This document shows, in pieces, positions 601 to 7,245 of a DNA stretch of 64,000 bases; the stretch's first letter is position 1, and every line of letters begins with the position of its first letter. Origin of the DNA: Thalia democratica (taxonomy: Eukaryota); assembly GCA_965202585.1 (NCBI GenBank), contig CBDBBG010000158.1:1-64000 (forward strand). The letters run 5' to 3'. Both the position numbers and the translations under genes were made by a program. The notes under the pieces are model-generated. The model did no database searches. It saw only the letters and a list, made by a program, of their open reading frames with translations, and was not told the DNA's origin.

Positions 601-755
601 GATGAATGAATAATAAAGCGACCAAAACGATACTTGCAAGAGTTACTGACTGTGACGAATTGACTGTCGAGCAGTTATGCTTTGCAAGGTACCTTTTACT
701 TCTTAGCATTTTTGCATTAGCATGTTTGTTTAACACATATATGCTTATAAAAACT
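601..755 (-). promoter_or_regulatory. H1 promoter region (octamer variants, TG/AC-box-like, Inr-like, no sense TATA)
   Basis: Sense ATGCTAATGCAAAAATGCTAA (703-723), TGTGTTA-AACAAACA (723-737) and TCAGT (645-649). Confidence 0.6.
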
Positions 756-1169
756 TAGTTGTCTTATTACGAATGTTGAAAAAGTTCCAGTAAGAAAGAA
801 ACCATATCTAACTTGTTCTAAAAGTAATTTTTTTTAAAGCATTAGTTTGAAAAGTCCAGAAATAACAGCCTGTATCTTACAGCACACCTCTAAATACATT
901 AAGAAAAACATAAATGAAACAAAACATGTTAACACACTCCCGACTGAGTTTTCCTTTGCCGCTCACCTAAAGTAATAAAGTTTTAACAAAGCACAAGGTT
1001 TTTTTTTACCTCAAACTTAAACAAAGTTTCATTATATCGATTTCATGGAGTTTTGTTAATCGTAAGTTCTATCAAGTATGTTCAAGTTAATTACAGTTTA
1101 AACTAATGTGTAAAAAGTAATTTCAAAAGAATAAAAGAGTTCATTTTGTTTAGCTTTACTAGTTATGAT

Positions 1170-1209
1170 TACTCATAATCAATATACTCATAAGCAATGT
1201 ACTCAAAAC
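1170..1209 (+). repeat. Short 15-bp tandem repeat, about 2.7 copies
   Basis: TACTCATAATCAATA / TACTCATAAGCAATG / TACTCAAAAC. Confidence 0.8.
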
Positions 1210-1299
1210 TTTTATTAAACAGACAACTAGATAACTTTGTTCTTGCACATACTAGTAACTTACCTTACAACAATGTTTTCCAAACAACCTTTCAAAAAC

Positions 1300-4200
1300 G
1301 TACTGTACAGTAACTATGATGATACTTGTTTGAAAGTTGTAAACTACGTTTAAACACAAATTTTATTTTCCAGTGTATATGAAAAACTAGTTTAACAGGT
1401 AAGTAGTTTAACATTCAATTGGTGTTTCAAACAACTGATTCAAGCTGTTATACAGTTTAAAAAATAACTGATGCGATTTTGCTCGTTAAACTTAAACCTT
1501 GATCAAACTAAGAACTTTAACTTTGCAGATTTCAACCGAATAAAGTGTGCTGATAAAAGTGAACAAATGGATTTGGTTGTAAATTTTTCAAACAAAATAA
1601 AGTTAATTAAATTCAAAGAAGTAAATAAGTCGAAAAAGCTTATGAACACTAGCACTAAATTTGAACTTAAACAAAAGCTGATATCTTTTGGATGAAAAAT
1701 TTTACGTAAAAAAAGAGGTTGGTTTATTTTTTAAGCAGCATTATATACAAAATAAAATCGAGTAAGAAAATCGAAATGAAAAAGTTTTGAAGTAAAATTG
1801 ACAAACTTAGTGTTTGAATAAAGCTTTGTTTACAATCAGCACTCATAACCTTTCAATCTATCTTTGAAACTTTTTAACTGGAAAATAATGCAACTAGGTT
1901 TTTTTTTCAAACTTTGTTTTGTCACTTCTCATAAAGTTTTAAAGTCAGTCGAAACAACATAGATACTGACACATATTTTGAAACAACAACAGTACTGTTT
2001 TTTAAAGTTTACGATTGAAGTGTTTACCAAGTTAAACATGTGTTTTAACTGCTTTACTGCTAATAGTAATTTCCTAGTTTACTCAACCTAGATTAATCAT
2101 AATGTTCTGTACCATTGATTTCATTGACTAAATGTTTTGCTTTTCGAAATTCGTAACTAGTTATCTCTAACTTACTGTTAATGTAGTTAAAAACACAGCT
2201 TAGGATAAGTTACATTTTATTCTCGGATGTCGTTAAGAACATAGCTGTTGTAGCAATAACATATAAACTTGAAGCAAAGTAACTGTTATCTTATTCAATT
2301 ATAGACCATATAAAACAAAGTATTTGCTTGATTCAAAGTTTTACATTGTAGTTTGCCTATTATGGAACTTGTACTGTCACATAATAGGCTGTAAAAAAAT
2401 GAAGGCTAAAAAAGTTTTTGTCTTGCTTTGTCCAATTTTTCTTCTTCTTTACATTTATAAAAACTACACAGCTTAAAGCAACAAGTTACAGTAATTTTGC
2501 TTTCTTATGTATAGCGTACTTAAGGGTAACAAACAAGTGGTAACAAGTTTTTTACTTCTTTTCTTTGTACCATGTTTCAGCTAATCAATTGGTTTATTTC
2601 ATATGCTTGACAAGATTAGAAAGCTTAAATCAAGTAAGTAGATGTAAGCTTTGTAAAATAAAAGATTTATTTATACAAGTTCATCATTTTATTAAGGTAT
2701 TTTGTTTTGTAAATTGCGTACTTGTTAATAGCGTTCTCTTTCTTTTGAACAAACGATGTTGTTTACATTTATGTGTTACACCAGTTTTGAATTGCTAAGC
2801 ATGTTTCAGTTGTAGTTTAATTGTAATTGAACAGTATTTTTTAAGGACACTAAACATTGTTTGTTATTAACAGTTTAAAACGTTTTCAGTTAATAAGTCA
2901 AAGTTTTATTTCTGTTTAAGCGTACTATTTTCATTGAAAAATAAAAATAGTTTTTACAGTGACGTAGGCACAGTTTTTTTTAATAAACTAAAAAACAAAT
3001 GAAATATTGAATTAAAAAATGTCCACAAAGTAAGCATGAATAAGAATAAGTTTTATTTGGAAAAGAAAGTTAAAAGGAAAAAGGCCACGAAAAAGACACT
3101 CAAGTTAGTTAAAGCTTTTCACTAAGCATTCGACAATAGTAAGCAATAAAGTAAGGATTAGAGCAGTTATCTAGCTAGAGTTCCTTTCTTAACAGTTGCA
3201 TAAAAAAAGTACAGTAGAGAAATTGTAGCGAGCTAGGTATTTAATAAATAATGGGTTTAAAGTTTGGAGGGAAATTGTTTTTTGATTCTTTTTCACCACA
3301 AAGTTGATTAAGTGTGTGTATTTGTGTTGTTGAGTTTAGTAGTCATTAGTAGCTTGTGTATTTAATTGGTGATCCACCTAATCTTTAGATTCAAAAAGTA
3401 CATAGCTTAAAACAAACAAGTATCGTCGTTTTGAGTTGTCTCATACATAGTTTAAAAAAGAGTTACAAAAAATGGTAACAAGCTGTTCCATTTTTACCTT
3501 GGAATCATGTCGTTATTTGTCATAGCCACAGAAAAAATGAGTTCAACAAAACAAGTATGAGCTTTGTAAGCAGAAAGATTATTTCAATTGTATGTTTGTT
3601 TTAAACAATCACTGTTGTTTACATTACTGTTCAACTTTTAAACAGTTTTTTATTGTTTCATTTGCATTCTGATAAGTAAAACTAATACTTATTTGACAAT
3701 CAGACCTTAAATAAATATCATTGAGCATTTTTAGTATCAAAGCAAAGTAAATGTTTCTTCTCATTTAATATAATGTCTTATTTAAGCATAATTTTTTATT
3801 TAGTGACAGATTGATTTTTTTATTAAACTAACAACAAATATCTATTGAGTGTTTGAAAAACAAGTTTACAAAGTAAAATGAACTAGAATAAGTTTTGTTT
3901 AAACAATAAGTTAAACAAGAAAATTCCCATTAAAAAACATTTTTACCTAACATTTAAATACTAGTGAAGCAGAAAAACTTATTCTACATTATCAAAAGTA
4001 GTTTAAAATGTCAAGTAGAACTACAAAAACTAAAGTAAGTGTAACTAACTAGTAGAAACAAAAACAGAGAAATTCAGCTTTAGAAAGTTTATTTAGAAGT
4101 TATTGAAACACACTAACTGTTACTTTTTACCAACACGCACAATGTAGATATAAATTTGTACATTTTTTTGTCGCTTAGTTTAAGCTTGTTTGACACTGTT

Positions 4201-5114
4201 TACTCGACATTAGTAGCTGCTTAAATCAACTGGTGGTCCTGATTACTTTAGATATGTAGAAACATAACTTTCAACAAACTACTAGAGTTGTTAAAGGTCA
4301 GTAAGTTGTCTCATATCTAGTTAAAACAAGTACCTTTTACTTTGAAAACTAGAATAATAAATTACTTAAAAAAGTACAAGCAGTTACTTTTTTGTGTTTT
4401 ACCAAGTTTCAACCAATGAGCTGGTTTGTTTTGTGTGTTTATGTTTTGAATTGAAAATGTTTCTTGAATATGCTAAACAGAAGTTAGCTTTGAAAGAAGG
4501 AATATGTTATTTTACTTGAAAAACACATCTGTAATTTTTTGTCTTGAACAACCATTTTTGTATTCATTTATGTATTCGTAACTTTTTAAAACGTGTTACA
4601 TGGCTTCAATTGCAGTTAAGTTGATAAGAAGAACTCGTTTAAAAAGTTAAAGCTCGGTTGTGTTACTAATAATCAACAACAACTTAAAATAAAGTTACAA
4701 CTAAGTTTTTGCATGTTATAAGTGATATACATTTTTGTTTAAAAAGATGATACTTTTTTGTAAGCACTTATTTATTGAATGTTTCAACAGAACTTCAGCA
4801 AATGAATAAAAACAAGTGTTTTGTACAAAAAGTATTCAGATGAAAAATCTTACGGACAACAAAATCAAGTTAGTTAAACATCTTTTACAAACCATTTGAT
4901 TACAAGCACTACTACTGTTTTTAGACTAATGCAATGCTTTTTCTACAATATAACGAGTTACAAGTTTATAAAGTATTTGAAACAAAAAAAAAGTGTGTTC
5001 ATTCAAGTATATGAGTTTTTAATTTACACAAATAAGAATTTATTTGTACTAAGCTTATATTCTTGTACTTTAAGTAAACATGAACAGCTGGTTCTATTCA
5101 AATGGTGGTCCTGA
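1300..5114. repeat. Degenerate ~0.85-1.0-kb subrepeats making up the spacer (recurs in each unit)
   Basis: Collinear anchors by eye: AGTTGTCTCATA 3434/4304; TGTTGTTTACATT 2757/3613; ATGAA(TA/CT)AGAATAAGTTTT 3036/3878 (degenerate at 4802); CAAGTTAGTTAAA 3101/4866; TGGTG-containing junction at 1420/3367/4231/5103. Confidence 0.75.
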
Positions 5115-5122
5115 AAAGGACC
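5107..5122 (-). terminator. Histone 3' stem-loop of H2B (recurs)
   Basis: Sense GGTCCTTTTCAGGACC-ACCA, 13 nt after the stop codon. Confidence 0.95.
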
Positions 5123-5135
5123 GGTTGTTTAGCGT

Positions 5136-5495
5136 TTATTTTGAGCTGGTGTATTTGGTAACAGCTTTAGTTCCTTCTGAAACTGCGTGCTTTGACAACT
5201 CGCCGGGGAGCAAGAGCCTGACAGCAGTTTGAATTTCGCGGCTGCTAACAGTTGACCTCTTGTTGTAATGAGCCAAACGTGAAGCCTCTGCTGCAATGCG
5301 CTCGAAGATGTCGTTGACAAATGAGTTCATGATTCCCATTGCCTTGCTGGAAATTCCGGTGTCGGGGTGCACTTGCTTCAAAACTTTGTACACATAGATG
5401 CCAAAGCTTTCTTTGTTCCTCCTCCTTCGCTTCTTCTTGCCGTCGACCGGAGCGGTCTTGGCTACTGACTTCTTCGCGCCTTTGGTTGCTGTCAT
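5136..5495 (-). CDS. H2B: Histone H2B, 119 aa (copy 1)
   Basis: [19 protein letters not shown]...[20 protein letters not shown] at 5495, 37 nt downstream of TATAAA. Stem-loop at 5107-5122. Confidence 0.98.
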
Positions 5496-5575
5496 GATGA
5501 TGTGTGGACTTCTGTCTCGGCGCCAGTTTATATGCTGAAAAATTATGCAAATTAGCATAGTTCCGTACGCGAACG
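5496..5575 (-). promoter_or_regulatory. H2B promoter: TATA + octamer + CGCG element
   Basis: Sense TATAAA at 5527-5532; ATGCAAATTAGCAT at 5545-5558 and CCGTACGCG at 5563-5571 on the + strand. Confidence 0.8.
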
Positions 5576-5628: not shown

Positions 5629-5644
5629 GGTCCTGAAAAGGACC
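5629..5644 (-). terminator. Histone 3' stem-loop of H2A (recurs)
   Basis: Sense GGTCCTTTTCAGGACC-ACCA. Confidence 0.95.
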
Positions 5645-5659: not shown

Positions 5660-6040
5660 TTAGGCTGACTTTTTTGAAGCGGTCTTCTTAGGCAATAGTA
5701 CTGCCTGGATGTTTGGAAGAACACCACCTTGAGCAATTGTGACGCCTCCGAGAAGTTTGTTCAACTCTTCGTCGTTGCGAATAGCTAGTTGCAAATGGCG
5801 AGGAATGATCCTGCTTTTCTTGTTGTCACGAGCAGCGTTACCGGCAAGCTCGAGCACTTCTGCGCTCAAGTACTCGAGAACGGCAGCCAGATAAACTGGA
5901 GCACCAGCTCCGACTCTTTGGCTGTAGTTGCCGGTGCGCAACAGGCGGTGCACGCGACCGACTGGAAACTGCAGTCCTGCACGGGAAGACCTGCTCTTCG
6001 GCTTAGATTTGAGTTTTGATCCTTTACCACGTCCTGACAT
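5660..6040 (-). CDS. H2A: Histone H2A, 126 aa (copy 1)
   Basis: MSGRGK...[13 protein letters not shown]...[16 protein letters not shown]. No C-terminal SQ motif, so not H2A.X. ATG at 6040. Confidence 0.98.

Positions 6041-6222: not shown

Positions 6223-6625
<403 letters not shown>

Positions 6626-6722: not shown

Positions 6723-7245
<523 letters not shown>

Follow-up and report, generated by a model that had tools for sequence, protein, structure and literature searches.

Direct repeats nested within the spacers of tandemly repeated genes are familiar from ribosomal DNA (rDNA), where they include the 240-bp subrepeats of Drosophila and the 60/81-bp and spacer-promoter repeats of Xenopus. Such rDNA subrepeats are short, almost identical to one another and variable in number from one unit to the next, and they contain functional promoter, enhancer or terminator elements. 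The same theme is present in PMC1215480. Here we report on nested subrepeats in the tandem histone genes of Thalia democratica, as found in a 64,000-nucleotide stretch of DNA (GenBank contig CBDBBG010000158.1, hereafter the window), which lies at positions 25740108–25804107 on C10 of an 801-Mb assembly. In our opinion, the long spacer between the H2B and H1 genes contains what is left of an ancient tandem amplification of the H2B 3' flank, now frozen and apparently neutral; we put the probability of this reading at roughly 0.8.

The Thalia locus resembles the tandem histone quintets or quartets of sea urchin, Drosophila, grasshopper and others, which evolve in concert: its unit comprises five genes, all on a single strand, and it is repeated many times in near-identical copies at several mutually differing loci. 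A 2026 survey covering the organisation of histone genes in more than 250 species reports unit sizes of 3.7–13 kb (PMC13525598). In a term search of that survey, the word "nested" was absent, and spacers appeared only in cited titles and in the description of rRNA units (PMC13525598). Literature searches for nested spacer repeats returned rDNA and 5S cases only. To our knowledge, a histone spacer made of multiplied H2B 3' flank has not been described. The fossil nested repeat reported here is thus a variant of the known spacer-subrepeat theme.

Nested subrepeats in the H2B–H1 spacer

The window is a head-to-tail array made up of 8.8 copies of a histone quintet of 7,275 bp; the copies mismatch one another at 1–6 positions and are ~99.9% identical. 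Gene order is H3-H4-H2A-H2B-spacer-H1, on the minus strand throughout. Five open reading frames (ORFs), five matches to the histone 3' stem-loop family (Rfam RF00032) and the near identity of the copies identify the locus as a tandem histone quintet under concerted evolution. The sole long spacer, at 640–5135, separates the H2B 3' end from the upstream side of H1 and is ~72% A+T. The initial annotation of the window proposed that this seemingly featureless spacer hides subrepeats of about 0.9 kb, and three such units are indeed present, all on the minus strand: C (4246–5114), B (3383–4245) and A (2447–3382). Unit C, which is the actual H2B 3' flank, extends from the stem-loop's loop as far as the motif that ends the units, CTTTAGA (in gene sense, TCTAAAG), while unit A is the most distal unit retained in the window array.

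The three units are genuine. In a self-comparison of 640–5135 by blastn (word size 7, +1/-1), the six best alignments, with scores of 58, 43, 40, 36, 32 and 31, all fall at offsets of 856–943 and 1759–1832; shuffled versions that keep the dinucleotide content within 500-bp blocks gave a best score of 21.5 ± 2.8 (mean and standard deviation; maximum 31, n = 40). Local alignments scored by a log-odds matrix fitted to the spacer composition gave z values against dinucleotide shuffles of 19.3 for A–B, 11.8 for A–C and 10.3 for B–C, the units being pairwise collinear over 560–770 bp at ~55–60% identity. A separate repeat search returned the same register, with spacings of 842–943 bp. The arrangement is therefore one of head-to-tail direct repeats within the spacer of a tandem gene array. 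The searchable exact anchors from which the units were first recognised all lie where they had been placed (TGGTAACAAG at 2538/3473, AGCTTTGTAA at 2647/3560, TGTTGTTTACATT at 2757/3613, CAAGTTAGTTAAA at 3101/4866, AGAGAAATT at 3216/4066 and AGTTGTCTCATA at 3434/4304), and the boundaries proposed at 2425, 3367, 4231 and 5114 are correct within about 20 nt; three gapped anchor patterns found no match in the form written.

The second line of evidence is the structure of the unit junctions. The intact H2B 3' stem-loop, GGTCCTTTTCAGGACC in gene sense, occupies 5107–5122 on the minus strand (RF00032 match at 5083–5127, 31.1 bits). In gene sense, each unit begins with TCAGGACCACCA, which comprises the 3' arm of this stem-loop and the ACCA bases of the cleavage site, and ends with TCTAAAG and a few further bases; the unit-end motif is found at 4246 and 3383 and takes the form CTTTACA at 2447. 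On the plus strand, the sequence TGGTGGTCCTGA at 5103–5114 overlaps the true H2B stem-loop, and an identical copy recurs as an orphan half stem-loop at the C/B junction (4231–4242, minus strand; TCAGGACCACCA in gene sense). The B/A junction carries a degenerate orphan, GGTGATCCACC, at 3368–3378 on the minus strand, and the same degenerate form is kept in other histone arrays of the genome. The internal junctions remain homologous to the H2B 3' flank for at least 50 nt beyond ACCA, and in all six array types described below they align with the H2B 3' end starting at the loop. Because TGGTGGTCCTGA recurs orphaned and homology begins at the loop, the founding duplication must have broken within the 4-nt loop, after position 5114, which is exactly the end coordinate proposed in the initial annotation. 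The proposal that the amplified segment starts at the H2B stem-loop is thereby borne out.

The orphan junctions share with RF00032 members the 3' stem arm, the ACCA bases and homologous downstream sequence, but they differ in missing the 5' arm and for this reason cannot form a hairpin. Thus, the RF00032 arrangement, in which a 6-bp stem carries a 4-nt loop and has ACCCA or ACCA after it, is found at neither 4231–4242 nor 3368–3378, where only the 3' arm and ACCA occur. The structure bound by SLBP cannot form from half a stem. Searching the spacer for a complete stem-loop gave no Rfam match in 640–5082 at E values up to 1.

Five unit classes in paralogous arrays

Further histone arrays were traced through a joint in public contigs that involves the window spacer. 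They were sampled as 10-kb pieces, and the genome search scored the best 40 candidates only. Five paralogous arrays are considered here: C7a (C7, 31.36–31.41 Mb; period ~7,195 bp), C7b and C7c (C7, 14.68–14.905 Mb; 8,621 and 8,187 bp), C8a (C8, 46.99–47.15 Mb; 8,796 bp) and C8b (C8, 46.18–46.20 Mb; 9,859 bp). The C7a spacer is 96% identical to that of the window, which represents the C10 array. In C7b, C7c, C8a and C8b the genes are 91–98% identical to those of the window, the spacers merely 60–85%. Profiles built from A, B and C, and then from 25 units, count three units in C10 and C7a, four in C7c, and five in each of C7b, C8a and C8b. The extra units lie between unit A and the segment at 640–2446, and the fourth unit contains a ~200-bp internal duplication in all four longer arrays. 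Orthologues of unit C stand beside H2B in all six array types.

In a maximum-likelihood tree of the 25 units from the six array types, the units group by position rather than by array, forming five classes with ~100% support each. Unit C falls in class 1, B in class 2 (clade support 100/99) and A in class 3 (100/100); classes 4 and 5 are absent from C10 and C7a. The arrays branch in the same way in every class, as (C10,C7a),((C7b,C7c),(C8a,C8b)), and class 2 forms a clade that takes in its C10 copy but neither class 4 nor class 5. The approximately unbiased (AU) test rejected the alternative in which these last two classes arose from class 2 after the C10 split (p = 0.0032). Since units cluster by position, the five-fold amplification must be older than the divergence of the arrays. 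The tree together with the AU test indicates that the ancestral spacer had five units and that the lineage of C10 and C7a lost units 4 and 5. The initial annotation had likewise supposed a roughly five-fold amplification; an ancestral copy number of about five agrees with it, but the two additional units are not to be found in the left part of the window spacer, as discussed below.

Identity between unit classes is 55–68%, and within a class, across arrays, it is 81%. Because the subrepeats of the window differ by ~40% while the quintets are ~99.9% identical, with 1–6 differences per copy, homogenisation now operates at the level of the whole 7,275-bp repeat and has ceased among the subrepeats, as had been claimed. 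Accordingly, neither mutual homogenisation of the subrepeats nor in-register change of their number was seen (identity 0.55–0.68, clustering by position). None of the structural changes found keeps to the register of the subrepeats. Thus, units of 6,623–6,662 bp neighbouring the window on C10 lack 644 bp (reference 3914–4558), with ~25 nt in its place; one neighbouring unit of 7,551 bp has 155 bp (reference 3732–3886) triplicated; and an indel of 1,024 bp separates C7b from C7c. Such out-of-register changes fit copies that have become too diverged to pair.

The likeness to rDNA spacers put forward in the initial annotation is therefore no more than the nearest analogy. The two systems are alike in that direct repeats are nested in the spacer of a tandem unit whose array is under concerted evolution, and in that both derive from a duplicated region of gene-flanking signals. 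They differ in that the histone-spacer units measure 0.86–0.94 kb and are 55–68% identical, rather than short and near-identical; in that every array has a set number of them, altered solely by out-of-register deletions; and in that they bear no apparent sign of function as judged from sequence. As possible regulatory elements they carry a duplicated half stem-loop with ACCA, from which no hairpin can arise, and a slightly better conserved junction core with an identity between classes of 0.77, versus a mean of 0.60. Lacking mutual homogenisation and in-register changes of number, the histone case is an analogy only.

The locus provides a clean natural case of a changed unit of concerted evolution, with an inner repeat ~60% identical and an outer 7.3-kb unit ~99.9% identical, and its 4.5-kb "featureless" spacer is traceable to the H2B 3' flank. 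Five classes with orthologues in at least six array types of one genome serve as internal markers, which should be instructive for the order and age of array duplications, for losses in individual arrays, and for the identity threshold at which repeats cease to recombine. Their value is descriptive and evolutionary; no new function or mechanism is indicated.

History of the spacer and alternative explanations

The following history would account for these observations. The first duplication would have linked the loop of the H2B stem-loop (TCAGGACCACCA…) with a point ~0.86 kb downstream of the gene (…TCTAAAGTAA); the join itself is in the sequence, and the absence of evident homology at it suggests a non-homologous event. 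While the copies were still alike, unequal exchange presumably produced the ancestral state of five units. The copies then decayed to 55–68% identity, probably too low for pairing, and the nested array would have been frozen as a result. Non-homologous deletions and small duplications followed, the lineage of C10 and C7a dropping units 4 and 5. Present homogenisation is confined to the whole quintet, and the units are probably no more than passive spacer that separates the H2B 3' end from the H1 promoter.

In keeping with this, unit bodies appear free of coding function and of evident constraint. Of the 52 indels between close arrays, 41 have lengths that 3 does not divide, and each frame contains 52–80 stops; judged by these figures, the units are non-coding. 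By blastn, the units of C10 share ~60–78% identity with their orthologues in the C7b/C8 arrays, whereas the four core genes show a difference of only ~0.10 at their four-fold degenerate sites, so that unit bodies diverge faster than these sites. The spacer shows no evident constraint, and the units appear to be neutral relics.

Several points weigh against this account of amplification, decay and neutrality. The group submitted to the AU test was picked after the tree was known. The class tree, (1,(3,(2,4,5))), misfits a simple neighbour-by-neighbour expansion, and a test of unit A for mosaic or hybrid origin gave no clear mosaic. Divergence in excess of four-fold sites is weak evidence of neutrality, because codon bias or conversion between arrays may slow the gene sites. 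Lastly, the junction core, 30 columns around TCTAAAG…AGGACCACCA, is the best-conserved stretch between classes, with an identity of 0.77; units average 0.60, and no other window of the alignment exceeds 0.753. Such conservation leaves room for weak constraint or gene conversion; at ~2 standard deviations, it is not compelling.

This conserved core speaks for a functional alternative, in which the subrepeats would be retained as termination or pausing sites, decoys or insulators between H2B and H1, as in rDNA spacers. The core also remains G+C-rich within a spacer of ~72% A+T, and the units sit exactly where read-through from H2B would reach the H1 promoter. Set against these points are the small size of the excess, with other stretches reaching 0.75, the existence of arrays with three, four and five units alike, the rapid divergence of unit bodies relative to four-fold sites, and the absence from the spacer of any match to the stem-loop model at E values up to 1. 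On balance, we regard selective retention as unlikely. Similarly doubtful are the more specific ideas that the orphan modules might act as pausing, termination or U7-decoy sites against H2B read-through, or that the stem-loop hairpin might be a recurrent break point seeding duplications.

The other alternative of comparable standing is that the window spacer itself holds about five units, 640–2424 representing two older and more decayed copies with a junction at 1420, as the initial annotation had proposed. The segment in question (640–2446, between the promoter side of H1 and unit A) has a length of about two units, and the spacing of 5114, 4246, 3383, 2447 and ~1420 fits. Moreover, the best match to a junction profile in 640–2440 falls at 1412–1436, with a score reached by only 2/100 and 4/100 shuffles. 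Yet pairwise comparison of the segment with A, B and C gives z values of 2.0 or less, and neither the three-unit profile on the segment nor the 25-unit profile on its counterparts in the six array types finds a match. The ~1420 site is absent from the homologous place in five paralogous arrays, and we treat the putative junction as a chance match. The segment is common to the paralogous arrays, in which it is 64–68% identical over a varying extent. In particular, C8b carries it (63.5% identical to all of reference 603–2374) together with all five units; the segment is therefore not units 4 and 5, and for these two units the proposal is largely refuted. Nothing supports a derivation of the segment from yet older units, and we consider the whole idea improbable.

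A short inverted repeat (GCCTATTATG … CATAATAGGC) lies at 2359–2395, near the right end of this segment and the site at which units 4 and 5 were lost. A joint of 1502 to 2377, which skips 874 bp of the segment, was seen in one contig at a depth of ~4, in the run of another organism; the joined form is absent from this assembly among the 40 candidates scored. Among the other joints in reads and contigs is an 870-bp skip, 3058 to 3929, in one run at a depth of 448. The joint of 3903 to 4844, with 16 inserted letters, was considered as a deletion in the window array and rejected, as it corresponds to a unit of a paralogous C7 array (95% match over the join).

Preference for amplification of the H2B flank over the insertion or local expansion of a dispersed mobile element rests on arrangement and location. 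AT-rich elements of ~0.9 kb without ORFs do exist, and diverged dispersed copies could be missed, since only the best 40 candidates were scored. The units, however, are strictly head to tail, their junctions consist of half the H2B stem-loop and ACCA, and unit C is the H2B flank. The exact junction pattern has 127 matches in the genome, and all 100 of those listed lie in histone arrays; the reversed control has none. No terminal inverted repeats were found at the unit ends among the inverted repeats detected, target-site duplications not having been looked for. With no ORFs and with all listed exact junction matches in histone arrays, these features of a transposable element are lacking, and a mobile origin of the units is very improbable. 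A chance or low-complexity likeness favoured by the ~72% A+T content is hardly credible given z values of 10–19 against dinucleotide shuffles and unit orthologues in five other arrays, and the variant that sees fossil protein-coding modules is refuted by the frame-breaking indels and the stops in every frame.

Gene coordinates and heterogeneity of the arrays

Within the reference quintet, all coding sequences are ORFs on the minus strand: H1 at 40–600, assigned to the linker-histone family by its features and preceded by the spacer on its upstream side; H2B at 5136–5495; H2A at 5660–6040; H4 at 6223–6534; and H3 at 6723–7133. All five genes are followed by a histone 3' stem-loop, with Rfam scores of 22–32.5 bits, slightly under the gathering score of 34. 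The stem-loop GGTCCTTTTCAGGACC is common to H2B (5107–5122), H2A (5629–5644) and H1 (7–22), those of H4 and H3 being close variants; the animal histone stem-loop is commonly GGCTCTTTTCAGAGCC, unlike the form seen here. No downstream purine-rich element common to the five genes was obvious.

When Joint Genome Institute (JGI) metagenome contigs were scanned for the junction pattern, the 11 contigs that matched proved unrelated, and none contained an orthologous spacer. The stretch was found in no RNA run.

The histone locus on C10 (25.635–26.058 Mb) is not uniform. Units to the left of the window (C10:25700108–25740107) are variants with 93–98% identity. Junction matches change strand at 25.866–26.015 Mb and revert at 26.02 Mb, indicating that a block whose periods are ~7,241–7,560 bp is inverted. 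The right edge of the array (26058210–26068209) lies inside a unit: only reference 5136–5557 (H2B) matches, at positions 1–422 of the locus, and unrelated sequence follows.

On C8, a further histone array at 54.36–54.45 Mb has a period of ~7,220–7,240 bp and junction sequence of the C10 type. The sampled C8a unit (C8:47112000–47121999) has the N-terminus of H4 out of frame, and in the sampled C8b unit (C8:46192000–46201999) the N-terminal part of H2B is out of frame and contains stops. H3 and H4 carry amino-acid changes in the sampled units of the C8 arrays, which may be decaying.

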